NCBI GenBank assembly: GCA_024704765.1
Contig: JAKMXF010000001.1
Location: forward strand, 29,493-93,492
Origin: Oopsacas minuta
Taxonomy: Eukaryota; Animalia; Porifera
Length of the DNA: 64,000 nt
Reading direction: 5' to 3'
A program made the position numbers and the translations under genes. The notes under the pieces were generated by a model. The model did not search any database and had not been told where the DNA came from. It worked only from the letters and a program-made list of their open reading frames with translations. Shown here in pieces: positions 22,269 to 57,729 of the stretch; the first letter of the stretch is position 1, and the number at the start of each line of letters is the position of its first letter.

Positions 22269-23336
22269 TTAGCTCTCTAATAACTTAGCCTTTTCAGATT
22301 TATACATGGACAGTCTAGTTTGTGCAAATTCTAGATAACAAAACGTAGCACGAGGTGACTCTATCATAGACAGAGCCCAGATGTATGCCAACATATCTGT
22401 TAGTATTCTACAACTCTCTATCTCTTCTACTATGCTCTCTATCTCAGCAATTGAATGAGTGATATTAGGTTGTAGTGCATGTAGATACATTCTAACAAAC
22501 TTACATCTCATGTGGAAAGATGGATAAGCTGCTTCTGAGTAGGAGTAGTATGGAGGTTCTTTAACTGAGTAGTCAAATGCTGATTCCTTGAAAAGCTGAG
22601 CTATGTCAGCTCCTCTGTAATAGTAACTACTGAATTCAAAATCTATACACTTTATAGTTAACTCATCTCTGTCTGTGAGTAATAGGAGGTTAGCTTGACT
22701 GTAATCATTATGACAGAACACTATAGGATAGTTGAGTTGTTTAAGATGTTGTTCTAACCAGTCTAACTCTTCCTCCCATTTCTTCTCACTCAACATTCCA
22801 TTCAACATACTCTGTCTCTTGGAATCAGATAGACAAACTTCCTCAGTCTTCTTCAACCATCTTCTCATACATTTGAACACGAAGCTTGCATCCTTAGGTA
22901 CTGGCATATCCTGTAGATGCATCTCTGCTATAATTCTGGTAGTGTGTGTGAGAACATTCTCTTGATACAACTCTAGATTAGTTAGAGTTCTACACTGATA
23001 GAAATGTTCTAGTCTTCCTTGTGAGTGAGACAGGACTCCGTACAGCTTAGGAGCTAGTCCTCTCTCAGAGAGGATAGCGTAGACAATATTCTGAGTGATT
23101 ATCTCTTCTTGTGACCAGATGTCAGAGAATAGTCTCAGAATGACAGTATCAGGAGTAGTAGCACTGGTAGAGGGTGTATGTTTCAGTTTTAGAATATACA
23201 GTTTATTAGTTTGTCCTTCTGTAATGGATTCTATATGGATTGGTGCTAGAGGTAGTGAGTACCAGTCTCCTCCCAGTAGTCTCCTACACATGAGTACTGT
23301 AGTGTCAGGAACTGGGATATCTACAGAAGTTGCCAT
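22269..23336 (-). CDS. Choline/ethanolamine kinase (copy 2)
   Basis: CHNDYSQAN and CIDFEFSSYYYRG motifs; ATG at 23336. Confidence 0.9.
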   Translation of the reverse strand: MATSVDIPVPDTTVLMCRRLLGGDWYSLPLAPIHIESITEGQTNKLYILKLKHTPSTSATTPDTVILRLFSDIWSQEEIITQNIVYAILSERGLAPKLYGVLSHSQGRLEHFYQCRTLTNLELYQENVLTHTTRIIAEMHLQDMPVPKDASFVFKCMRRWLKKTEEVCLSDSKRQSMLNGMLSEKKWEEELDWLEQHLKQLNYPIVFCHNDYSQANLLLLTDRDELTIKCIDFEFSSYYYRGADIAQLFKESAFDYSVKEPPYYSYSEAAYPSFHMRCKFVRMYLHALQPNITHSIAEIESIVEEIESCRILTDMLAYIWALSMIESPRATFCYLEFAQTRLSMYKSEKAKLLES

Positions 23337-24403
23337 CACACAAATACTTACTTGCTAATTTGATTAATAAATAATGTAAGGTCAAGGGTTGGTGGGCAAA
23401 TTAACTTAGCTTTACACAGTTACACCATGTTACATCACCAGATTTTACCATACGTATACGTATTTGCAATTTGCATTAATTAATGGAAGTGTGACAATAG
23501 TCACAAAACCATGCGATACACTCGAAATGGTCAGAGTCGAGTTTATTTACTAACAGAGTTTAGTATGCACTATCAGTACATCCAGTATCCATGCTTGCAT
23601 ATACTGGATGGCATATTATGAAATCATTCTAGTACAGATTTACCTTGGATTGATGTAAGAAATGCCCAAGGACATGTACTCGAATTATAATACCTCATAA
23701 TTTGACATAATTGATAATATAATTAGTAATTACCAATAAATTTCATTTTGTAGCAAAATGGTAGAGTCTAATAGCAGTAGTGTAGATATCCCAGTTCCTG
23801 ACACTACAGTACTCATGTGTAGGAGACTACTGGGAGGAGACTGGTACTCACTACCTCTAGCACCAATCCATATAGAATCCATTACAGAAGGACAAACTAA
23901 TAAACTGTATATTCTAAAACTGAAACATACACCCTCTACCAGTGCTACTACTCCTGATACTGTCATTCTGAGACTATTCTCTGACATCTGGTCACAAGAA
24001 GAGATAATCACTCAGAATATTGTCTACGCTATCCTCTCTGAGAGAGGACTAGCTCCTAAGCTGTACGGAGTCCTGTCTCACTCACAAGGAAGACTAGAAC
24101 ATTTCTATCAGTGTAGAACTCTAACTAATCTAGAGTTGTATCAAGAGAATGTTCTCACACACACTACCAGAATTATAGCAGAGATGCATCTACAGGATAT
24201 GCCAGTACCTAAGGATGCAAGCTTCGTGTTCAAATGTATGAGAAGATGGTTGAAGAAGACTGAGGAAGTTTGTCTATCTGATTCCAAGAGACAGAGTATG
24301 TTGAATGGAATGTTGAGTGAGAAGAAATGGGAGGAAGAGTTAGACTGGTTAGAACAACATCTTAAACAACTCAACTATCCTATAGTGTTCTGTCATAATG
24401 ATT
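22703..24403. repeat. 623-bp inverted repeat (22703-23325 / 23781-24403) with a 455-bp spacer
   Basis: Identical translation from VDIPVP to CHND. Boundaries give equal lengths; spot-checked nucleotide blocks match exactly. Confidence 0.92.
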
Positions 24404-24843
24404 TATACTCACAGAATATAATCAGACTACTAGACAAAGATGAGTTCAATATTCGTGTTATTGACTTTGATATGGCTTCATACAATTATAGAGGTTATGA
24501 ATTTGCACAGCTGTTCCATGACTTATTATTTGACTATTCGTGTACGGCGCATCCTGGCTTCAAGTACTTACCAGATCAGTACCCTTCTCTAGAGCAGAGA
24601 CAGAATATAGTCAGACTGTATTTACAGAGATTATATGACAGGGATACTACCAAGGAGGAAGTAGATCAGCTGGTGAATGAAATACAGCAGACAAGACTGT
24701 ATTCTTGTCTGTTCGTGTTTTTATGGGGCTTGAGAGCCTCAGTGGTTTATAACTATCCTTTCGATTCTTTATACTTTGCTAAGGTATATCTTTCAATGTA
24801 CAATACTGAGAAAGAAAGATTATCTAAACAAAAATTTGAATAA
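23758..24843 (+). CDS. Choline/ethanolamine kinase (copy 3)
   Basis: CHNDLYSQN and VIDFDMASYNYRGYEFAQLF motifs. Confidence 0.9.
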   Translation: MVESNSSSVDIPVPDTTVLMCRRLLGGDWYSLPLAPIHIESITEGQTNKLYILKLKHTPSTSATTPDTVILRLFSDIWSQEEIITQNIVYAILSERGLAPKLYGVLSHSQGRLEHFYQCRTLTNLELYQENVLTHTTRIIAEMHLQDMPVPKDASFVFKCMRRWLKKTEEVCLSDSKRQSMLNGMLSEKKWEEELDWLEQHLKQLNYPIVFCHNDLYSQNIIRLLDKDEFNIRVIDFDMASYNYRGYEFAQLFHDLLFDYSCTAHPGFKYLPDQYPSLEQRQNIVRLYLQRLYDRDTTKEEVDQLVNEIQQTRLYSCLFVFLWGLRASVVYNYPFDSLYFAKVYLSMYNTEKERLSKQKFE

Positions 24844-44579: not shown

Positions 44580-46091
44580 TTAAATAGATCGTAGTTTAAC
44601 TTTAAGTCCATCTTCAGGTTTTAGAATCATTTGTGCCAATCGCTTGATATCTTGAGGAACAGATTCCAGCTCAAAACTGTGAATAATACGAGCTACAACA
44701 ATCAATTCTTCTGTTAATGCGAATTTCTGTCCGATACAGTTACGGTGACCAGCTGAGAAAGGAATGTATGAGAAATTACTACCTCCTGGTTTCTGGGAGT
44801 AGAATCTGGTAGGATCATACTTGTCTGGATTCTCCCAGTACTTAGGATGACGGTGTAACAGTAAAATGGGGATGCTGACAGGTGTACCTTTGGGAATTAT
44901 GTAATCATCAACTACCAAATCTTCGTTGATTATGCGAGAGATGAATGGAACGGGTGGGAATAATCGCATGGATTCTTTGATACACATAGATGTGAATTTA
45001 AGGGAATCTAAATCATCCCATTCTATTCGTTCTCTCCCCCCTAAAACAGATTGTATTTCCTCTCTACACTGACTCTGAATATCTGGATGTTTTCCTAACA
45101 TGTACAGAGCCCATGCTACTCCAGATGCAGTAGTGTCATGTCCCTCAAATAGAAACGTGTTCATCTCACTCATTATATCACTGTCAGAGAGAGTATTTCC
45201 AGAAGAATCAGGTGACGTCAGTAGGATATCGATAAAGTCAGGTCTGATCTTGACAACTTTCTCTCCTGATACAATAGCCTTTCTTCTTGCTTGCACTACT
45301 TTAAGAGATTCCTGTTTGATTCTGTTACATACTTTACGCCATTTAAATCCACTAGGAGACAAGCGGAAATATAATGGAAGCAAATATGGCCAATAGCTAA
45401 GTTGTTCTATCGTTAATTTACCCGAATCAAAAATTGCTGAAATGTACTCATTCACTTCACTAGTTACGTCTAACTGACAATTAGATTTATAGGAACAGGC
45501 ACATTGTAGTATAACATCCAAGGTGTAGAGAGTAGAATCTTGAAATACATCAACAATAGCAGTGTCACTCCCTACTTGTGATCTCCATTTATTCAGTAAC
45601 ACATCTGTCGTGTCATTATAGGTAGACATGTATGATTCAATTATACCTAAATGGAATGCTGGAGTTAGCAGTCGTCTGCGAGAGAACCATTTCTTGTAAT
45701 TTATAACCAGTAGACCAAAACCTAAGAAACTAGTTACTAACGAATAAGTAAATGGAAACTTAGGTGTTAGGTCAGGTCCCATTGAGAGTACTTTTCCTGC
45801 TAATTCTGGGTCTACCACTCTCAATATATCGATAAAAGGTCCCATCCTTGTTCTTATTATTTTATCGTCTTTATGATCTTTCAGATAATTTTCAAGATTA
45901 GTAAGTCTACGTTCATCATTTCCAAAAATATGCAATGTTCCCCAGAGAGGGTGTAGCTTGGGTCCTGGTATCTTATTCAATATTGATCTTCTCTTAAAAA
46001 ACGAGGTTGCTTTTATCACAATAATCGTTAGGATTAGTGGGATCAGTATGTAACTGAGAGAAGGTAAATATACTTCAAATCTTTCCCACAT
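44580..46091 (-). CDS. Cytochrome P450, clan 4 (copy A)
   Basis: N-terminal anchor, FEGHDTT, KESMR (ExxR), PTRF, PFSAGHRNCIG heme motif. Confidence 0.95.
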   Translation of the reverse strand: MWERFEVYLPSLSYILIPLILTIIVIKATSFFKRRSILNKIPGPKLHPLWGTLHIFGNDERRLTNLENYLKDHKDDKIIRTRMGPFIDILRVVDPELAGKVLSMGPDLTPKFPFTYSLVTSFLGFGLLVINYKKWFSRRRLLTPAFHLGIIESYMSTYNDTTDVLLNKWRSQVGSDTAIVDVFQDSTLYTLDVILQCACSYKSNCQLDVTSEVNEYISAIFDSGKLTIEQLSYWPYLLPLYFRLSPSGFKWRKVCNRIKQESLKVVQARRKAIVSGEKVVKIRPDFIDILLTSPDSSGNTLSDSDIMSEMNTFLFEGHDTTASGVAWALYMLGKHPDIQSQCREEIQSVLGGRERIEWDDLDSLKFTSMCIKESMRLFPPVPFISRIINEDLVVDDYIIPKGTPVSIPILLLHRHPKYWENPDKYDPTRFYSQKPGGSNFSYIPFSAGHRNCIGQKFALTEELIVVARIIHSFELESVPQDIKRLAQMILKPEDGLKVKLRSI

Positions 46092-46245
46092 TATCTATAA
46101 ATTAATTTTATTATTACTAGACAATAATTATAAACACAATAGACCAATATTTCCGCTACCCAAATCATATAACATCCTTCGATCCAGGAATTGCTGGTGG
46201 GAGGATAATAATTCAGCAGAGAGCGCTGTAAATCCCCTTGGGATC

Positions 46246-46358
46246 CAGGGGGTTGCTGTGGGAAAGGAATTTCAATTCCCATTTCCATCCCATTCCCACA
46301 GGATTTCTGTGGGAATTCCCATAGGATAACTACGATTCCCATTCCCACGGCAACCCTG
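46246..46358. mobile_element. Small TIR element (MITE)
   Basis: Imperfect TIR CAGG(GG)GTTGCTGTGGGAA / TTCCCACGGCAACCCTG, internal TTCCCA repeats, no clear TSD. Confidence 0.55.
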
Positions 46359-47451
46359 CGACAAGCCCTATATGCCATTACATTTGCCTGAGGCAACTTC
46401 CAATCTCCAAATAATTTCTCTTAAATTTATCATTGTAGTGTGGCTCCAACCATAGGCGCCGAAAGTGGGGGGGGGTCAGGTTTGGCCCCCTGAGTGAGGA
46501 AACAGTCAGGGATGGTCAGTAACGTAACGAGCATTATTGCTATGTGTTATTGGGTATGCATAGAACGAGTTATTTCACCCTTTCGTTACAAAGCTATTCA
46601 TTCCAATAAATGTATTGAAATCTAATTAACTGTATGACTATTCTTATTCCAGCACTCTGATTTGCAAAATACGATGATTTTACAAGCATAAAAGCCGAAA
46701 GTGGGAGGATTTGTGTGGGTAAACCCTAAGTAGTATGAGAGAGCTATACCTCTACAAGTCAATATTAGCTTATTCCCATGTATATACTTTGCTTTGGTCT
46801 ATGGTGACGGAAGTTGTGTGAGCTGTAACGGTGTGTATGCCCAAGTATTATGAGCAAGACAACACATAAGTAGCTTATGATACGTTTGTACAAAACTTAT
46901 GTGTGGTTTTACTTGAGGAAAATTAAAATTTGTCGTTTACCACACAATCACAGAATATTTTGAACAACCTTTATCAAACTTTTTGTTGTGACTTTTCAGA
47001 TGGAATCAATTTGTCAATTTTGTAGCCAATTCTATAAAATAGTTGGTAATACCTCCTGAATAATGTTAATCTTGAAAATTACAAGAATCAACTTTCGGCT
47101 GAATGGATAGTTAACTACCTCTCGCTAGTCAAGCAGAGGTCAAAAATTAAGAGAGAAAGCTTCTAGGCAGTACATATTACTGTAATTTTCAAGTTCACAT
47201 GTATAGTAATCGACATTTCAATTATTCTCTAAAACTTACCCGTTCCATTCCGTTAAGTAGGGGACAATAACGACAGGTAGGTCAGGCGGTAAGCTGAAAA
47301 TAAGTTGTAAATATTATTTCACATTTACAGAATATCCGTGCTTGACCACCGCCGGAGAAATGTTAAAGTGCTTCTGGCGCCGCTATTTAATAGGGAATAA
47401 TGTTCGGGGAGCATTAATCCCTGAGTGAAAATGGGAATAGGATAGGAAACG

Positions 47452-47646
47452 GTACACACTAGTTATGTCTCCAGAAGAAAAGAAAGGCTGTTGATGAGGT
47501 ACAAATTGAAGGAGACTCAGCTACCTAGGATACAACATACAGACCCTGTAGCTAGATATCTGGGACTCAAGAGAGGAGAAGTTGTAAAGATTATTAGGCC
47601 CAGTGAAACAGCTGGACGTTATATTACTTATAGACTTGTTCAGTGA
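47452..47646 (+). pseudogene. POLR2E: 5'-truncated RNA polymerase subunit RPB5 fragment
   Basis: VMSPEEKK / [52 protein letters not shown] matches the RPB5 C-terminus. One frameshift; no N-terminal part is recognisable upstream. Confidence 0.85.
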
Positions 47647-47993
47647 TTCAATCTGATTATTCAAATATCAATTGTTAATTGTTTGATATGAAATTGTTTT
47701 CTAATCAAATACAATATTCGTGAAGACGATACCCCTATCGCTTATTCACTCTAGAAATTAAGCTTATTTACAATTTGTGTATTGCTATGTCAGAGCAATA
47801 AGGTAGTTTTACATTATTTATCCTAAACACATAATTGATGAATATTTTAATAAACCAAATGCCATTGATCTGTAATTACTTTCATTGGTCATTGATTTGT
47901 GGCCACTTAACTGAGAATATCGTGCTATTATTTTCGTGATTTACAAAAATATTCAAAAATTGTCAGATCTACTGTATATCAATTCAGTATTAG

Positions 47994-49774
47994 ATGTTTG
48001 GAAGGAAAGCAAATCCTACCCCTCCTAAGTCAATCACACATCAACGACACAATACTTCAGTAACCTCTCATCAGACAAAACCTGAAACTTACGGTGGTAG
48101 TGAGTCTAGAAGCAGTAAGACAGCTAATAGAGACTTGTTTAATGAAGATAAAAGCTCACCCACTAAGAAGATGTATACACCACAAAAAGAGATAAAAGAT
48201 AAAGATATTCAACCTCTCAAACAGAAACGTAAAGATTCTCACGACTCTACAACTCCACGACATAATGACGCCAATAGAAACAGTATACGTACACCAAAAT
48301 TGGATGCTAATACCAATCCACCTTGTGCAACCGATACCAGGGATACGGATAAAGTCAAATCTAGGTTCAGTTTAAGATCTCACTCGTATTCTAAAGATTC
48401 TGGTAAAATTAACTCTGTTCCTAAGCATATTTTTGACACAAACGTAAGTACAAAACTAAGTGATTTGGAAGATAGCAAGTCACATCCTTTTACCTCAGTA
48501 TCTACTGCTACAGCTTCTAAATCTACTGATAAACAGGCCAGAATATATCCAAACCAAACTTACATATTGGATCGATTCACTACAAATACATCACAGCTTA
48601 CAATAGACAAATCACCTCAATCAAGCATTAATCCAGCTTTGAACACTCTACCGGCTGGAAGTCAGACTGGAATATCTGCGCTGACCCACCTGTTGAAAGA
48701 TCTATCAGTTTCATTACAAATAATAAATCAAGTACTATAGTACTAAATGCACAGAAACCTAATCGCGGCCTTAAGAATCTAGGCAACACCTGTTTCATGA
48801 ACTGTATTCTACAGTGTCTCAGCCACACGCTCCTACTCAAACAATTCTTCGTTTCAGACGATTATAAGAAAGATCTTGCTGGTCGTAAGGGAAATCTTTC
48901 TTATGCGTTTAAATGTGTAATGACAGAACTATGGATCTCCAGCAAAGACCCGTACCCTCCATATGATCTGAAGAAACAAGTGGGAATTGTAGCGCCTAGA
49001 TTCTCCGGATACAGTCAGCAAGATGCTCAAGAGTTCATGCGTTTCCTGCTTAACGAAATTCATGACGAGATTAATAAGGCAGAATTGAAGAAACGTCAGG
49101 CGCCAAAGAAGAACGAGTCTCTGAAAGAAGCTTTTGATAGATACCTGACCTGGGAGAACAGTAAGATATCTGACTTGTTTAGTGGAATGCTACGTAGAGA
49201 GGTTTGCTGTTCTGCCTGTAAGAGTAAATCTATCGTATACGATCCTTTCATGGATCTTGCCCTCCCTATCCCGAAAATCAAAAACGTATCCCAATCGTTT
49301 ACTTCTTACTCAATATCTTACGATAATACTACTACAGATTGTGCTGTCAAACTAAATGATTGTCTCCAGCTGTTCACACACGAGGAAACTCTAGATGATG
49401 AAGAGAGACCTTACTGCAATAAATGTAAGACAATGACAAAATCTACCAAACAGTTAGGTATAGAAAGGCTACCTAGCTTCCTTGTTATTCAGCTGAAGCG
49501 ATTTTCTGGTTACAGTATACGCAGCAAGCTATCAACACCTGTAGAGTTTGAAGAGAATTGGGAGATACAAGATTACAATAATAACACTCATTCCTACTCT
49601 CTCTACGGTATTGCTTGTCATTCTGGTGGAATATATGGTGGTCACTACACTGCATATTGCAAGTATGACAAACAATGGCGCTATTTTAATGATCATTATA
49701 CTATGCTATCTAGCTGGGAACATGTCAAACGTCAAGAGGCTTATATACTATTCTACGAAAAGAATACTCAATGA
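47994..49774 (+). CDS. Ubiquitin-specific protease, USP2/USP21-like, probably 2 exons
   Basis: S/T/K-rich N-terminus (47994 frame). Cys box GLKNLGNTCFMNCILQCL lies just upstream of track ORF 48797; QQDAQEF, QLKRF and His box HSGGIYGGHYTAY follow. Candidate intron 48708-48754 joins the frames. Confidence 0.88.
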
Positions 49775-50125
49775 ACTTCTTCCCGTCACTTACTCTAACT
49801 AAGTGACTATGCTAGGCTTTTACCTCATGCACTGTTTCTTACTATTTCTCATGCGTACCCTAAATATATCGAATATATATGTTATCAACTCACTTATTAC
49901 ATTTGATTTTTACCTTGTTTCCCTCTTATGTAACAATATATATGTACGTGTATGTCCACTACTTTTCAATTATACAACACTGAATTGAAATACTGATTCC
50001 TATTGCGATATTTATTATGTACCAGTTGTCCCTGTATTCAAGTATTTGTATTCGAACTACTACTTCAATACATTATATTCCTAAGTAAATAATTTGTTTA
50101 TTCCCCAGGGTTCTAATAGTATCTG

Positions 50126-50728
50126 ATGAATTATTTCCAAAGTATCCCTAATCATTTCCCAGATATAGAAGAAGGCGGTTGGATCCCTACTGATCACTTC
50201 CTGACTGCTTGTAACACATTCATAACATTCACTGATCTGTTAGGCCCTGTTCTGTCACGTGCTAAGGATTCTGTCACTGTGAATATCAATATACTACGCA
50301 AGCGTTATGATCGCGACAACACAAAGTACATGTATTTACATGAACTTATTCTCGATGAAGATTCAGAACCAGACCCTGCTATATACATATCTCTAATCTG
50401 GTTGAAGCGAGCTATAGAATTTATTTACATATTCCTCAAACAACTCACAACATCTACTCACACATCTCTCCCACAAGATGCATATCATGCTTACCAGATA
50501 TCTCTGAAACCTTACCATGGATTCATTATACGTAGTTTGGTATATATGTTGATTAATATTGCGCCTAGCAAAGACAATCTTATCAACACTTTAGTACAAG
50601 GATCACTGGGAGGTAGGGAACAATTGTTTTTGGATATAAATGAGTATATAAAGCCAATGGCTACTAATTTAAGAGCTGTTGATAAGCTTCTGGATGATAA
50701 CCAACTTGTGGATAATACTGTTGTTTGA
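50126..50728 (+). CDS. Glycolipid transfer protein (GLTP) family
   Basis: IPTDHFLTAC...LGP...NI..LR...LIWLKRAIEF...AY..SLKPYHG. Confidence 0.85.
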   Translation: MNYFQSIPNHFPDIEEGGWIPTDHFLTACNTFITFTDLLGPVLSRAKDSVTVNINILRKRYDRDNTKYMYLHELILDEDSEPDPAIYISLIWLKRAIEFIYIFLKQLTTSTHTSLPQDAYHAYQISLKPYHGFIIRSLVYMLINIAPSKDNLINTLVQGSLGGREQLFLDINEYIKPMATNLRAVDKLLDDNQLVDNTVV

Positions 50729-51246
50729 ATTTCAGATTACATAGCACTAGGGGTTCATTATTGCATTGTTTAGGTTCATTTTGTTGTACAGGATTTTTTC
50801 ATATATTTGATATTATGACTGAGTCTATCCAGTTTATATAAACCTACGGGCTAGATTGGGTGCAAAGACGTTTATTCAAATCTCTAGCGCCTTTTTGAAT
50901 TTTACTATATATGGTGTGAAAATATGATTAATCACTAAAATGTATGGAATCTAACAAAAACTGACAAAAATCAATCTAGTGGCAATTTTACTATTTATCA
51001 AACTGCTAGTTTCGCAGGAATATACGGACAGAGTCCGTCCATCCCGCATCGTCCTTGGCGTAAGCCGTAAGGACATCTCCCTATAGCAACTAAACTAAAA
51101 ATATATTTGCAAACAATCACTAAATTGCGTGAAATTGCATATCACTATGATTATAGAAAGTATCTTACATAATTACAATTTGATCTGCCACTTCATCACC
51201 CAACACCTGCGAGCCACTGTAAGCCACGCAAGTGACGCAACTATTC

Positions 51247-52110
51247 ATGAGTAGTCCTGAAATTTCTTTCACTCACCTCGTTACTATGGAAACAGATCCT
51301 CAGCGTCCATTATTTTATCCATTCCCTTCACTCTCCATGGAATCTCATAAACTTAGAGCTCTGATGATTACAGTTGATTATGTAAGAGAGCTTGTATTTC
51401 TTTATGATGAAGACAGACAGATACACACTTTCAATAAACAGCTGCAACACCTGAATCAATTCAAACTGAATTTCCATGTAGAATCTATTACAACAGCTCC
51501 TGACTCAAACCTCATATTTCTCAAACAATCACTTTGTAAAGAAACATTTATACAGGTGGTTGATATGTTTAGCGGATCGCTGGTTACCAGTTGGAAGTTA
51601 TCAAGTTGTCACATGGGAATAACATGTGATTCTTCTGGCAACCTGTATACCTGTGATTATCTTAATTCTCGCATCAAAATATTCGATATGTTTGAGCCTG
51701 TGTCTACATCATTCACTCTTTCTCCAATGAATTTCCAATTAACTCCATACACTGTAAAGTTAGCTCCTGACAAATTCTCGATATTAGTTCAGAATTTAGA
51801 ACCTGCCTTCTTCTTTCAGGTGTACGATCTGTGTGGAAATCTTTTGAAAACTTTCTCTAACAATAAGGAGAATTACGTAAGAGATTCCTTCACTACTGCT
51901 AACATGAATTGTGCCATAGTTTGTATACACCATGAATTGCATTTCTTGGATCAGCAAAGTGATACAATGATTACACTAGGAGGCTTTGGTAGGACAATTG
52001 GTAGCTTTATCCGTCCATTTGCTATAGCATTTCTACCTCCTGACCTGTTTATCATCTGTAATGAATCTGTCTCTTACCCTATCCAGTGTCTTAACTTTCA
52101 ACCATTTTGA
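51247..52110 (+). CDS. NHL-like beta-propeller protein
   Basis: GITCDSSGNLYTCDYLNSRIKIFD and GGFGRTIGSFIRPFAIAF; first ATG at 51247. Confidence 0.7.
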   Translation: MSSPEISFTHLVTMETDPQRPLFYPFPSLSMESHKLRALMITVDYVRELVFLYDEDRQIHTFNKQLQHLNQFKLNFHVESITTAPDSNLIFLKQSLCKETFIQVVDMFSGSLVTSWKLSSCHMGITCDSSGNLYTCDYLNSRIKIFDMFEPVSTSFTLSPMNFQLTPYTVKLAPDKFSILVQNLEPAFFFQVYDLCGNLLKTFSNNKENYVRDSFTTANMNCAIVCIHHELHFLDQQSDTMITLGGFGRTIGSFIRPFAIAFLPPDLFIICNESVSYPIQCLNFQPF

Positions 52111-52122
52111 TTTTCTATTAGC

Positions 52123-53379
52123 ATGTACTCTTTGTGTTCAAAGTTGCTAACGAGTTTTAATCCTACACACTGTTTGATACGTTGGAAGCATTATGATGTG
52201 ACTATTGTGGGAGGAGGAATAATGGGGATGAGCTCTGCTTTCTTTCTCTCCAAGCGAGTACCCTCTTCGAGTATTTGTGTGTTAGAGCGTGACCGCACAT
52301 ACTCAATGGCCTCTACACCTAGGTCAGTAGGCTCCATCAGACAGCAATTCAGTCTGAGAGAGAACATACAACTCTCTTCTTACTCATTCGATTTTCTTCA
52401 GAATATCAATTCTCAATTGAGAGTAGATGACCCTATAGATATCGGCTTCACGTCAGGAGGGTACTGCTTCCTTGCCACAGAAAGAATGCGGGACAATCTA
52501 TTAGAAAATAATAAAATTCAGTTAGAGAACGGAGCTGAGGTTGAACTCATTGAAGCTTGTGACTTGAAGCAGCGTTTTCCTTGGATTAACCCTGAAGGAG
52601 TGAGTTTAGCTTCTCTTGGCAGAGGGAGAGAGGGATGGTTCGATCCTTGGTTACTTCTCAATGCATTCAAGATTAAAATACACAGTTTAGATATCGATGT
52701 TATTAATGGTGATGTCATTAAAATTGATATGAGTCGAGGGAAAATTTCTGGTTTGACATTTGTAGACTCGAATGGAAGCAAATCTGAAATAACTTGTTCT
52801 CACTTGATCATTGCAGCTGGCGCATGGTCTGATTCTGTTATTAAGATGGTTAATCCAGAGTTTGGCTTACCTATCCGCCCCAGAAAACGAATGGTGTTTG
52901 TATACAAATGCAAAGATTTCCATGACACAACATTTCCTATGCTAATCGATAGCTCAGGTGTATATACCAGGAGAGAGGGAACACATGATACTTTTATTTG
53001 TGGCAAGAGCCCCGATACAGACAAAGATACAGACACGCTAGATCTAGAGGTAGAATATGAATTTTTTGATAAAGAGATATGGCCTGCTCTTGCTCACAGA
53101 GTCCCTGCCTTTGAGGCTATTAAGGTTGTGAGTGGGTGGGCAGGTACATACGAATACAACACTTTAGATCAGAATGGCATCATGGGTATACATGATAAAG
53201 TTAATAATCTATATTTAGTGGGTGGATTCAGTGGTCATGGGATACAGCAGAGTCCTGCAGTAGGACGAGTAATGAGTGAGCTTGTATTGGATGGAGAGAC
53301 ACATTCTATAGATTTGAAGAGGATGGGATATGAGAGGGTTAGAGACAGGAACCCCCTCAAAGAGAGGAATATTATATAG
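52123..53379 (+). CDS. FOXRED1: FAD-dependent oxidoreductase domain-containing protein 1 (complex I assembly factor)
   Basis: GGGIMG FAD motif, RSVGSIRQQFS, EGWFDPW, WPALAHRVPAFE, GFSGHGIQQSPAVG, ends ERNII. Confidence 0.93.
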   Translation: MYSLCSKLLTSFNPTHCLIRWKHYDVTIVGGGIMGMSSAFFLSKRVPSSSICVLERDRTYSMASTPRSVGSIRQQFSLRENIQLSSYSFDFLQNINSQLRVDDPIDIGFTSGGYCFLATERMRDNLLENNKIQLENGAEVELIEACDLKQRFPWINPEGVSLASLGRGREGWFDPWLLLNAFKIKIHSLDIDVINGDVIKIDMSRGKISGLTFVDSNGSKSEITCSHLIIAAGAWSDSVIKMVNPEFGLPIRPRKRMVFVYKCKDFHDTTFPMLIDSSGVYTRREGTHDTFICGKSPDTDKDTDTLDLEVEYEFFDKEIWPALAHRVPAFEAIKVVSGWAGTYEYNTLDQNGIMGIHDKVNNLYLVGGFSGHGIQQSPAVGRVMSELVLDGETHSIDLKRMGYERVRDRNPLKERNII

Positions 53380-53451
53380 CAATGTTATTATATCCTCATT
53401 GAATATATTATACTATTTGTATACCTGATATTGTATCTGTTAAACATTGCT

Positions 53452-53452
<1 letters not shown>

Positions 53453-53500
<48 letters not shown>
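53453..53500. repeat. (TTA)n microsatellite
   Basis: About 15 TTA units. Confidence 0.95.
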
Positions 53501-53501
<1 letters not shown>

Positions 53502-53845
53502 CCTTGATTAGTGAACAATTGGGCATATTCCTCTTTGAAATTACATCATCTCACAATTAGTAGAGTGATATATAGCCAGTAATATGAGTGGTAAGATTGA
53601 TCCTGATGCTTTCAATGAGAGAACTAGGACAATGCCCAGACCTCTATGCGATGGTCAAATCATCGTATCTGAAAATGATAAGGGTGAAATAATAGAGCAG
53701 AGAATTACAATGCTAAGGGTATAGCTGTAGAGCTGTCCAGCAAAACCAATACAGCCCAGGCCATCTGTGGTGGGAATTTACGGACTCTTGCATCTCTGCT
53801 GTACTTACATTTTTAACAAGCTATTATATTGGGTAATTAGATAGA

Positions 53846-55360
53846 ATGCGGGAAATTTTACAAGAGAATTTTCACTCTATTCTCTATTACATTTTGCTAC
53901 CAATTTGCCTAACACTAATCGCATTAAGAATAAACTCTGTTTTGAAGAGAAGATCATTATTCAATAAGTTACCAGGACCTAAGCTACACCCCCTCTGGGG
54001 TACCATGAAATTATTCGGACCTAAAGAAGTTGGACTAAGTAAATTCGAAAATTATCTCAAAGAACATATAGATGATAAAATCATAAGATTGAGAATTGGA
54101 CCCTTTCGATATCTTATAAGAGTTTTGGACCCAGAATTAGCCGGCAGGGTACTCTCAATGGGACCGGAACTAACTCCTAAATCTCCCAACAGTTATCGCA
54201 TGCTAACTGAATTCTTAGGTTTTGGTCTACTGGTTATAAATTACAAGAAATGGTTCTCTCGCAGACGACTGCTAACTCCAGCATTCCATTTAGGTATAAT
54301 TGAATCATACATGTCTACCTATAATGACACGACAGATGTGTTACTGAATAAATGGAGATCACAAGTAGGGAGTGACACTGCTATTGTTGATGTATTTCAA
54401 GATTCTACTCTCTACACCTTGGATGTTATACTACAATGTGCCTGTTCCTATAAATCTAATTGTCAGTTAGACGTAACTAGTGAAGTGAATGAGTACATTT
54501 CAGCAATTTTTGATTCATCAAAATTGACGATAGAACGAATAAGTTATCTGCCGAACTTGCTTCCATTATATTTCCGCTTGTCTCCTAGTGGATTTAAATG
54601 GCGTAAAGTATGTAACAGAATCAAACAGGAATCTCTTAAAGTAGTGCAAGCAAGAAGAAAGGCTATTGTATCAGGAGAGAAAGTTGTCAAGATCAGACCT
54701 GACTTTATCGATATCCTACTGACGTCACCTGATTCTTCTGGAAATACTCTCTCTGACAGTGATATAATGAGTGAGATGAGCACGTTTCTATTTGAGGGAC
54801 ATGACACTACTGCATCTGGAGTAGCATGGGCTCTGTACATGTTAGGAAAACATCCAGATATTCAGAGTCAGTGTAGAGAGGAAATACAATCTGTTTTAGG
54901 GGGGAGAGAACGAATAGAATGGGATGATTTAGATTCCCTTAAATTCACATCTATGTGTATCAAAGAATCCATGCGATTATTCCCACCCGTTCCCTCTATT
55001 ACTCGTGTTGTCAACGAAGATTTGGTAGTTGATGATTACATAATTCCCAAAGGTACACCTGTCAACATCCCTATTATACTGCTACACCGTCATCCTAAGT
55101 ACTGGGAGAATCCAGACAAGTATGATCCTACCAGATTCTACTCCCAGAAACCAGGAGGCAGTAATTTCTCATACATTCCTTTCTCAGCTGGTCACCGTAA
55201 CTGTATCGGACAGAAATTTGCATTAACAGAAGAATTGATTGTAGTAGCTCGTATTATTCACAGTTTTGAGCTGGAATCTGTTCCTCAAGATATCAAGCGA
55301 TTATCGCAACTGATTTTGAAATCGGAAAATAAGCTTAAAGTAAAGATACGGACTATTTAA
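53846..55360 (+). CDS. Cytochrome P450, clan 4 (copy B, inverted relative to copy A)
   Basis: Same P450 motifs as copy A, with long identical tracts. Confidence 0.95.
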   Translation: MREILQENFHSILYYILLPICLTLIALRINSVLKRRSLFNKLPGPKLHPLWGTMKLFGPKEVGLSKFENYLKEHIDDKIIRLRIGPFRYLIRVLDPELAGRVLSMGPELTPKSPNSYRMLTEFLGFGLLVINYKKWFSRRRLLTPAFHLGIIESYMSTYNDTTDVLLNKWRSQVGSDTAIVDVFQDSTLYTLDVILQCACSYKSNCQLDVTSEVNEYISAIFDSSKLTIERISYLPNLLPLYFRLSPSGFKWRKVCNRIKQESLKVVQARRKAIVSGEKVVKIRPDFIDILLTSPDSSGNTLSDSDIMSEMSTFLFEGHDTTASGVAWALYMLGKHPDIQSQCREEIQSVLGGRERIEWDDLDSLKFTSMCIKESMRLFPPVPSITRVVNEDLVVDDYIIPKGTPVNIPIILLHRHPKYWENPDKYDPTRFYSQKPGGSNFSYIPFSAGHRNCIGQKFALTEELIVVARIIHSFELESVPQDIKRLSQLILKSENKLKVKIRTI

Positions 55361-55852
55361 GCTTCTATTCATCTGGGACACTATTATATGTGTACTACTA
55401 TATAGATTGATTTGTTAGAACTGTAGCATACATTTTTGAGTTTTTATATGAGAATTCTCATACCCACTGCTGGTTAGATACTAGAGATATACCCTATTCA
55501 AATAATCGCCCCCCTTTTGGGGGGGTTTGAAATTAATAAACGCCTACCCCGAATAATCTCCCCGGCTACTATTCGAATAAGTACGTTATGTTGGATAAAT
55601 ATAGTATATGCTTTATACATAATAAAGGTGGAGAATTCAAAGTTATATACAGTAGACTCCGCTCAATAGAGCCACCGGATAATCGGGTTACCTGGCCGGA
55701 AACAGTACCATACAAATAGTGTTAAATTACTCTGGTTAACTAAGCCACATAGTTCAGCATTTGGTTTTCATAGCACACTTTTCCTTGCTTTTAATGAATG
55801 TAATTGCTGTATTCATCCTTAAATAAATAATAATAATAATAATAATAATATC

Positions 55853-56509
55853 CTATGTCTCTTTATCAATAAGTGTTCCTTTCTTTTTCTTGATACCAGA
55901 TTTCTCCTCTATAGCCAGTACCTCAGCAGCTCTCTTCCTAGTGATAGAGTCTGTCTTTACTAATTGTCTCTGAACCAGTCTAGCATTTGTAGCAAAGGAA
56001 TTCTCATATTCTCTCTGCTCCAACTCTTGCTCATCTTCATCTATAGTAGATACAGTAACTGAGCTGTATTTGCCATATTCTTTTAACATTTTTGTAACCA
56101 TCACTTTCTTAGGAGCTGGTTCTTTCTTAGTCACTTTAGCGCCATCTTCGCGGTTTTTAACAAGAGATCCTTTGAAAATGAAGAGTGCTCGTGTGTCGTT
56201 ATCAGAGTGGTTGTAGTAGAGAGGGAGGTGACATTTACCACATTTGTGTCTGAGCTGTCGTTCTACTCCCTCCTCTCTCCTAATGTATACAACATCTCCA
56301 GGCTGTGACATTGATTTAAAAGCACGCTGAGATTTATCTATAACTCTAGCTCCATCTCTCCTACGACAGGGCAGTTTATCAATCACTGAGTCTATGATTA
56401 GCGCCATTTCTCCACATAGACAGTAGTATACATGGAGAGGAGAGTCTTCATACTCCTGCTTGCCTTTAGTATCAGAGCAAGCAACACTGTTAGATATAAC
56501 CTTTGGCAT
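55853..56509 (-). CDS. STEEP1: STING ER exit protein 1 (CXorf56/UPF0428)
   Basis: MPKVISNSVACSD...PLHVYYCLCG...LPCRRRDGARVID...EGVERQLR.KC.KC.LPLYY. Confidence 0.92.
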   Translation of the reverse strand: MPKVISNSVACSDTKGKQEYEDSPLHVYYCLCGEMALIIDSVIDKLPCRRRDGARVIDKSQRAFKSMSQPGDVVYIRREEGVERQLRHKCGKCHLPLYYNHSDNDTRALFIFKGSLVKNREDGAKVTKKEPAPKKVMVTKMLKEYGKYSSVTVSTIDEDEQELEQREYENSFATNARLVQRQLVKTDSITRKRAAEVLAIEEKSGIKKKKGTLIDKET

Positions 56510-56832
56510 TATGCTAATACACATACATAATATTTAATTATTCTTAATCAATGTATTACCTCGAATAAACTTCACTTTGATGGATCTTAAATTTCTTACA
56601 GCGAAAATACGTAATCTCTTCCCAGAATACGATACATCTACAGTTACTGAGGGCAAATCACCGAGATAAGTATATACAATAGAACTAAGATAAGACTTAC
56701 TACACGTTTTTCAGAAATTACAATATTACTAGGAGATTAAGTTACCAATAAGAGAGGCTAAGAATGAATAAACGTCTCGTCTACTATTGGAGGTAACACA
56801 TTACTATATATTGAATACATCAGGAAGGTTAA

Positions 56833-57729
56833 TTACTGTGTAGTGAGAGAACAGAGAGAATCAGAGAAGAAATCAGGTATGAGGTTATCAGGGAGATCTT
56901 TATATCCAGCTAGGAACTCAGCTCTCTTTGTAACTCCGGTCAGAATTAATAAACTCTTCAATCCTGCCCTCTTAGCGAATAGGATATCACTGTTCAAGTT
57001 ATCTCCTATCATAACAGCTCTGCTACGTTCAAACGGAAACTCAGACTCAATACAATTAATAAATGGCAAATATGGCTTTCCTATGACTGTAGCAGTACGA
57101 CCTGTACTGTAATTAATGGCTTGTATAAAGCTCCCAGTAGCACCTGGTATTATGGTACCATTCCCTACAGGAATAACTCTATCCTCACTAGTACCTATGT
57201 AATGACAGGCAGGATTCTTGAGATAGAAAAATGCTTTGACTAACTTTTTGTAACTAAAGTGATAATCAGTAGCTACCACTACAGCTTGTACTTCTGGGTC
57301 TATATGTATATTTTCTATTTCTCCGGGCTCTCCTGTCATTGTATCAGGTCCTATGTCCAGGCAGGTGAATCCTGCGTTCTCAATCTCCGTCTTCATACCA
57401 GCCTCTCCCATTAAATATACTTTTCCAGTTAGTTTCAGTACATGTTTGAGGTAGTGAGCTGTTGCATAAGAACTCGTATACACATTCTCAATAGCTATGT
57501 TAGTGAACCCAAGCTTAGAGAATTTGTAAAATGTATCAATTCTGGATTGTGTGTTCTTATTTGTAACGAAGTATATCTGCTTACCAAGCTTTTGGAGACA
57601 ACATATAGCTTCTATAGCACCTGGGAGAGGAGTCACACTCTGCCAGACAACTCCGTCACAGTCAAACAGGTATGTATCTGTTGAGTGCAGAAGTTCCTGC
57701 CATTCAGAACTACACCTAAGTTCATTCAT
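56833..57729 (-). CDS. PGP: HAD class IIA phosphatase (phosphoglycolate/pyridoxal phosphatase-like)
   Basis: FDCDGVVW, FVTN, GKP, MIGDNLNSDILF. PGP versus PDXP is not resolvable by eye. Confidence 0.85.
   Translation of the reverse strand: MNELRCSSEWQELLHSTDTYLFDCDGVVWQSVTPLPGAIEAICCLQKLGKQIYFVTNKNTQSRIDTFYKFSKLGFTNIAIENVYTSSYATAHYLKHVLKLTGKVYLMGEAGMKTEIENAGFTCLDIGPDTMTGEPGEIENIHIDPEVQAVVVATDYHFSYKKLVKAFFYLKNPACHYIGTSEDRVIPVGNGTIIPGATGSFIQAINYSTGRTATVIGKPYLPFINCIESEFPFERSRAVMIGDNLNSDILFAKRAGLKSLLILTGVTKRAEFLAGYKDLPDNLIPDFFSDSLCSLTTQ

Follow-up and report, generated by a model that had tools for sequence, protein, structure and literature searches.

Two inverted CYP4-like P450 genes of the glass sponge Oopsacas minuta share a scaffold homogenized by gene conversion and keep divergent islands, most of which touch substrate recognition sites

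The glass sponge Oopsacas minuta carries two inverted cytochrome P450 genes that are almost identical over most of their length and highly diverged in a few short patches. We analyzed them in a window of 64,000 nucleotides (nt), the whole stretch of DNA studied, from contig JAKMXF010000001.1 of GenBank assembly GCA_024704765.1 (positions 29,493 to 93,492); positions below are those of the window unless another contig or locus is named. Gene A (44580-46091, minus strand) and gene B (53846-55360, plus strand) are intact, intronless CYP4-like open reading frames (ORFs) of 503 and 504 amino acids. Our results strongly support the conclusion that A and B are old duplicates that later underwent interlocus gene conversion within the coding sequence: about 70% of the gene has been overwritten by conversion, and the first 122 codons and four short patches, here called islands, keep the old divergence. 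Most islands fall on substrate recognition sites (SRSs), and we consider it reasonably probable that conversion homogenized the scaffold and that selection spares the substrate-contacting patches of the two versions. A preliminary description of this DNA had proposed both recurrent gene conversion and selection preserving two substrate specificities.

The inverted repeat formed by the two genes has arms at 44580-46059 and 53881-55360, which are 1480 nt long, 90% complementary, and end at the stop codons. The codon alignment contains one gap, of one codon, and 153 nucleotide differences. All differences are confined to codons 1-122, 224-237, 312, 383-389, 407-413, and 486-503 (B numbering is used throughout), plus three lone synonymous changes at codons 438, 458, and 466; the identical runs measure 305, 223, 213, 76, 59, 59, and 54 nt and reach position 55302. 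The unconverted 5' block (codons 1-122; 53846-54211 in B and 45729-46091 in A) spans the membrane anchor, the A helix, the beta1 strands, and helices B and B' (the latter SRS1), and it ends just past the B' helix. Tract 1 follows, with 305 identical nt (54212-54516 in B, equal to 45728-45424 in A) that run through helices C, D, and E into the beginning of F; as the 1146 nt beyond codon 122 contain 48 differences in all, an identical run of this length has a permutation p of 3e-5. The first island, codons 224-237 (54515-54556; A, 45384-45425), holds five nonsynonymous and four purely synonymous codon differences, and its proportion of synonymous differences (pS) is 0.80. Tract 2 (54557-54993, 437 nt) equals 45383-44947 of A except for a change at 54780, which makes residue 312 Asn in A and Ser in B and splits the tract into runs of 223 and 213 nt. 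The next two islands are short: codons 383-389 (54992-55012; A, 44928-44948) read PFISRII in A and PSITRVV in B, and codons 407-413 (55064-55084; A, 44856-44876) contain SIPILL in A and NIPIIL in B. Tract 3 (codons 414-485; 55085-55300; A, 44640-44855) carries the three lone synonymous differences, and the last island (codons 486-504; 55301-55357; A, 44583-44639) has a pS of 0.66. The tracts given in the preliminary description (305 bp, 437 bp with one N/S change, and further tracts to about 55302) are exact to the base in this alignment, its six peptide islands are all present as written, and the first ~120 codons, which it called diverged, correspond to the 5' block.

Synonymous (dS) and nonsynonymous (dN) distances were estimated by the Nei-Gojobori method in three partitions. 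The 5' block (122 codons) has dS 0.76, dN 0.30, and pS 0.48, and the homogenized tracts (335 codons) have dS 0.014, dN 0.001, and pS 0.014. For the four islands (47 codons), pS is 0.68, which is saturated, dN is 0.22, dN/dS is about 0.13, and dS is 1.76, a value somewhat inflated because island boundaries were drawn around the differences. Compared along the pair, as the preliminary description had recommended, and done here by partition, dS is strongly heterogeneous, rising from 0.014 for the tracts to 0.76 for the 5' block. Third codon positions follow the same course: 51 of 121 differ in the 5' block and 21 of 47 in the islands, against 3 of 335 in the tracts. Of the 17 codons past codon 122 whose changes are synonymous alone, 14 sit no more than 3 codons from an amino acid difference, where 14% would be expected to do so (binomial p = 6e-10; permutation p < 5e-6). 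Since synonymous differences adjoin the amino acid differences, the islands are old sequence and not adaptive changes on a young copy; they are at least as old as the 5' block.

These numbers bear directly on the alternative that a recent duplication of the whole gene was followed by rapid positive selection at the SRSs and the N terminus. Such a history would fit the concentration of differences in SRSs, as well as the faster protein evolution of A in the 5' block (dN to a relative, P0003, is 0.37 for A and 0.23 for B), but synonymous sites have reached or neared saturation in the islands and the 5' block, unlike in the tracts, synonymous and nonsynonymous changes cluster together, and dN/dS is below 1 in every partition, with both ORFs intact. 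The surroundings of the two genes are also unrelated: comparison of 1.5 kb upstream and downstream of A and B revealed no homology above shuffled controls, and no similarity was found into the spacer between them or past the stop codons. Similarity limited to the coding sequence fits an old duplication with later interlocus conversion. A recent duplication is already contradicted by the synonymous sites, and we give it almost no chance of being correct.

To place A and B among related genes, we used a word-indexed protein search, which found close relatives only in ENA metagenome assemblies, at 55-77% identity; we take these to come from related glass sponges. In the tree of the tracts, A and B are sisters (support, 100/99), and forcing B into the clade of relatives P0003-5 is rejected by the approximately unbiased (AU) test (p = 0.0004). 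By contrast, the tree of the 5' block and islands places B with P0003-5 (91/96) and A outside in the best tree, although the AU test does not reject a grouping of A with B there (p = 0.19). The earlier claim of gene conversion is upheld by the dS contrast, by the absence of flank homology, and by the sister relationship of A and B in the tracts. Its recurrence is less secure. Codons 414-485 (216 nt) keep 3 residual differences, versus 1 in the remaining 789 nt, a weak hint of at least two conversion events; tract 3 may stem from an older event than tracts 1 and 2. We found no signal of GC-biased conversion when GC content at third positions was compared between the tracts (0.32) and the 5' block (0.27-0.32).

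Divergent islands could also arise if a young duplicate pair had received short segments by microconversion from another, diverged P450 gene. The genome does contain at least 20 further P450 loci, but the nearest other paralog is only 48% identical in protein, and when the island versions were compared without gaps with 18 other P450 loci, their best nucleotide matches reached 55-71%, which does not exceed the match of A to B. With no paralog above 48% and no island match in these 18 loci, a third donor is unlikely, and we regard it as a very faint prospect.

The O. minuta genome (61 Mb, 365 scaffolds) was assembled with hybrid SPAdes (k up to 99) from 150-nt Illumina and PacBio reads and polished with Pilon (PMC10280926), and de Bruijn bulge collapse together with Pilon cross-polishing might have made moderately similar paralogs locally identical or chimeric, the more so as the identical tracts are longer than the Illumina reads. 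However, four isolated single-base differences were kept inside the tracts, so paralog-specific single-nucleotide differences were not all collapsed, and polishing is unable to erase 25-40% divergence, so tracts and islands must truly differ. In addition, PacBio reads went into the assembly, a related sponge has a paralog pair with peaks at the same places in independent short-read metagenome assemblies, and the mosaics of other pairs in the O. minuta genome are graded rather than all-or-none. An artifact is therefore very improbable, and the mosaic itself is real, although a small true divergence within the tracts could be hidden.

Both genes are P450s by profile and by motif. The Pfam profile PF00067 (p450) matches A with an E value of 2e-97 (327 bits) and B with 3.8e-100 (336 bits), far above the gathering cutoff of 22.8, and the match covers nearly the whole profile in each. 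FSAGHRNCIG (the loop with the Cys heme ligand), ESMR (the ExxR motif of the K helix), and EGHDTT (I helix) are present in A and B, and these three motifs are invariant across a 60-sequence alignment. Gene A is named "Cytochrome P450 4B1 [Oopsacas minuta]" at NCBI (P0002), where its start is annotated slightly differently. Identity of A and B to named animal CYP4A/B/F-like proteins is 37-43%, which is borderline under the nomenclature rule that membership in the CYP4 family needs >40% amino acid identity to a named CYP4; therefore, we call them CYP4-like. Their place in clan 4 is safe, and the family name is left to the nomenclature committee. The solved structure closest to B by sequence is rabbit CYP4B1 (5T6Q; E = 1.8e-85). 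An AlphaFold model of B (predicted local distance difference test score, 89.4; predicted template modeling score, 0.89) returned CYP4B1 entries at ranks 1-3 in Foldseek, with template modeling scores of 0.85-0.90. In most CYP4 enzymes, a glutamate of the I helix is ester linked to the heme. Glu317 of B, like its counterpart in A, pairs in the alignment with chain residue 293 of 5T6Q, which corresponds to native Glu310, described as the heme-linking residue of CYP4B1 (PMC9916508).

We placed the differences on the P450 fold using the secondary structure of the AlphaFold model and the alignment to CYP4B1, the exact SRS boundaries being set by homology; the assignment of SRSs to structural elements is standard in P450s (Gotoh 1992, as cited in PMC4419802). 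The end of the 5' block, codons 108-122, falls on the B' helix (114-124 in the model) and thus on SRS1. Codons 224-237 cover the second half of the F helix (213-233) and the F-F' turn, which belong to SRS2 and the F-G loop, and codon 312 lies in the I helix (304-335), 5 residues before Glu317, in SRS4; the Asn of A at this position is invariant in the 11 closest relatives. Codons 383-389 form strand beta1-4 (384-389), 9-15 residues past ExxR, and correspond to SRS5. Codons 486-504 comprise the beta4 hairpin and then the C-terminal strand beta3-2, of which the hairpin only is SRS6, and codons 407-413, at the end of beta1-3 and the start of the K' helix, are not a canonical SRS. Mapping onto a structural model, as the preliminary description had suggested, therefore puts most islands on SRS elements; its assignment of islands to SRS1, SRS2, SRS4, SRS5, and SRS6 stands for most of them, and SIPILL/NIPIIL, as it had implied, is not a canonical SRS.

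The coincidence is statistically supported at two levels. Among the 19 amino acid differences downstream of residue 122, 11 lie within the 59 residues of SRS2-6 (p = 3e-5), and 4 of the 5 blocks of differences overlap an SRS (p = 0.017); the block-level test is the fairer of the two, given how the differences cluster. Variability alone does not predict the islands: the non-SRS segments that vary most among relatives (173-179, 208-214, and 478-484) are identical in A and B and so were homogenized, and of 89 highly variable columns, the two genes differ at only 13. Close relatives more often share the state of A at 13 columns and that of B at 9. Derived states thus occur in both copies, and we rejected the idea that a single copy is the derived, neofunctionalized one.

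Other P450 paralogs show related patterns. In a related sponge, P0003 and P0004 are paralogs (one sample, two loci) with a background dS of 0.27, and their third-position divergence is raised at SRS1 (8/15 versus 52/335; p = 0.001) and across the A/B island set (p = 0.017). The support from this pair is modest, since orthologs too have raised divergence in the F-G region. Within the O. minuta genome, contig 111 (1358151-1368606) carries four P450 genes in alternating orientation, L007-L010, which are 96-98% identical in nucleotides among themselves and 33-34% identical to B in protein. Differences specific to L009 cluster at codons equivalent to SRS1 (113-117), SRS5 and beta1-3 (381-413), and SRS6 (477-489). 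Between L007 and L009, 19 of 44 differing codons fall in the island set defined from A and B (p = 3e-7), and site patterns of the four genes alternate along their length, as in a conversion mosaic. The beta1-3/K' segment (407-413 in B; equivalents 406-418 in L007 and L009) is spared in two unrelated P450 pairs, although it is not a canonical SRS; this segment adjoins the SRS5 strand in sheet beta1 and may covary with SRS5.

What keeps the islands apart is a separate matter from what made the tracts alike. We infer that selection preserving two substrate specificities is the best reading of the pattern. Haplotypes in which conversion had moved the substrate-contacting residues of one copy into the other would be removed by selection; two versions of the B' helix, the end of the F helix, the beta1-4 strand, and the beta4 hairpin would then persist, and the shared scaffold alone would be homogenized. 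The inverted arrangement may help, as a crossover between inverted repeats would flip the spacer rather than delete it, so that such a pair can persist. A and B are probably putative heme-esterified omega-hydroxylase-type CYP4s, which would act on two different lipid or hydrocarbon substrates. The selection proposed in the preliminary description gains from the coincidence of islands with SRSs, the homogenization of variable non-SRS segments, the dN/dS of about 0.13, and the second P450 cluster, and it keeps its conditional standing.

The same islands would also be seen if conversion were real and they persisted for mechanical reasons, with fast-diverged segments blocking heteroduplex extension or undergoing patchy mismatch repair, in which case no selection would be needed. 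Discontinuous conversion tracts are well known. The columns that differ between A and B are indeed the more variable ones among relatives (Mann-Whitney p = 1.6e-5), and the third-position divergence of the F-G region is raised even between orthologs. On the other hand, the most variable segments were homogenized, as noted above, islands of 21 nt amid hundreds of identical bases should eventually be swept into long tracts, the dN/dS of the islands is about 0.13, and an unrelated P450 cluster spares the corresponding structural positions. We consider mechanical escape unlikely, though it deserves far more weight than an artifact or a third donor.

Several points count against selection for two specificities. 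The evidence comes from only one genome, so that removal of converted haplotypes by selection is presumed. The placement of SRSs rests on secondary structure and homology rather than on distances to the heme. Island 407-413 lies outside the canonical SRSs, as do codons 495-503 of the C-terminal island and the greater part of the 5' block. The island-level test gives only p = 0.017, and the higher variability among relatives of the columns that differ between A and B (0.61 versus 0.31) is what would be expected if SRSs evolve fast. In a hybrid SPAdes assembly polished with Pilon, the tracts may be a little less than perfectly identical, and islands separated by 305-437 nt of identical sequence, whose linkage depends on long reads, could be misphased. 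Finally, the replicate in the related sponge is modest, and one part of it, the F-G region, is raised in ortholog pairs as well.

The 7.8-kb spacer between A and B (46092-53845) holds five unrelated ORFs, which, from ORF calls and Pfam, are an unnamed ORF, a UCH-type ubiquitin protease, GLTP, an NHL-like ORF, and a flavin adenine dinucleotide-dependent (FAD) oxidoreductase. On the contigs of the relatives, STEEP1 (88-90% identical to its counterpart in the window) and HAD (67-80% identical to its counterpart) lie beside the P450 gene. B sits at this conserved STEEP1/HAD position and is the positional ortholog; A is elsewhere. The relative orientation of P450 and STEEP1 flips among species (L021, L022, L023, and L026 compared with 53846-57729 of the window): the genes are convergent in Oopsacas and the P0006 species and co-oriented in the P0004, P0005, and P0007 species. 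A tandem arrangement is seen in a related sponge, where the truncated 3' half of a second P450 copy (L022, 7032-7748) lies upstream of P0006; this copy is 2-10% diverged from P0006, most strongly at SRS5, and its heme loop, HMNC, is degenerate.

In the 5' block, the synonymous distance between A and B is 0.76, that from B to P0003/4 is 0.9-1.2, and that from A to P0003/4 is 1.2-1.3. Motif sharing had raised the idea of an ancient trans-species pair, with PVPSITRV in B and P0003 and PVPFIxR in A, P0004, and P0007, and the best tree of the 5' block and islands leaned the same way. We rejected this idea, since the AU test on that tree does not reject a grouping of A with B (p = 0.19), the A-B dS is below that of B to P0003/4, and only STEEP1 and HAD are syntenic. 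On the same three grounds, we consider the duplication an old event confined to the Oopsacas lineage, with an apparently faster protein change in A. PVPSITRV is shared by B and P0003 although they are not orthologs by synteny or synonymous distance; convergence or old polymorphism could account for it.

Mosaics are found beyond the P450 genes. In the same window, a choline/ethanolamine kinase pair lies head-to-head (22269-23339, minus strand, and 23758-24843, plus strand), with about 180 codons toward the 5' end (roughly 21-200) identical in nucleotides and the rest 28-62% diverged, a conversion-type mosaic. On contig 11 (622689-626512), a tandem P450 pair (L012 and L013) with 98.2% nucleotide identity shows minor peaks of divergence over codons 60-80 and 100-120; the A/B island set holds no excess of its differences (p = 0.34). 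Conversion between nearby paralogs seems to be common in the compact O. minuta genome. A bolder proposal, that this sponge keeps many neighboring paralog pairs in a lasting balance of conversion and selection (at least two P450 clusters and the choline kinase pair), is conceivable, but we hold it to be doubtful.

If selection does preserve two specificities, the pair is a natural mutagenesis experiment in which conversion has erased nearly all background differences. What is left downstream of residue 122 is 19 amino acid differences, 11 of them in SRS2-6, plus a diverged N-terminal block that ends in SRS1; these would be candidate specificity determinants in a CYP4-type enzyme of an early-branching animal. 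Should the bolder proposal hold, divergence peaks of this kind would provide a natural residue-level map of such determinants, and the P450 map would include a noncanonical one at beta1-3/K' (residues 406-418). For the theory of how duplicate genes evolve under conversion, the pair supplies a case from a sponge.

The closest precedent is among primate P450s. CYP2D6, CYP2D7, and CYP2D8 are homogenized by conversion, and non-SRS trees cluster the paralogs while SRS trees do not (Yasukochi and Satta 2015, PMC4419802), a pattern read as purifying selection on SRSs that keeps the specificities apart (PMC4419802). A and B likewise are P450 paralogs widely homogenized by conversion whose SRSs are kept different. 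Unlike the primate genes, they are CYP4-like members of clan 4 in a glass sponge, intronless and inverted, and separated by 7.8 kb with unrelated genes between them, and their contrast is much sharper, with dS 0.014 set against saturation and islands as short as 21 nt. Human red and green opsins, together with the Teshima-Innan model, illustrate how conversion keeps duplicates alike while a divergence peak marks the sites that define function (PMC3924837). A and B resemble them in having divergence peaks under frequent conversion, with several peaks in place of the single one of the opsins; the selected sites of the opsins are known experimentally, whereas the meaning of the islands here is drawn from P450 structure. 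The GOT1 paralogs of the copepod Tigriopus californicus are reported to have islands of divergence that persist despite conversion and were read as regions under selection (PMC3728101); they belong to a different enzyme family and come with population-level data, whereas A and B are known from one genome. For function, the nearest reference is rabbit CYP4B1 (5T6Q, 6C93, and 6C94), a fatty acid and alkane omega-hydroxylase with covalently bound heme. It is the best match in both sequence and structure and shares the I-helix motif FEGHDTT with A and B, yet identity in the structural alignment is only 31-32%. The pattern is thus already known from primate CYP2D and the opsins, and A and B are a new and unusually clean case of it in a CYP4-type enzyme of a sponge.

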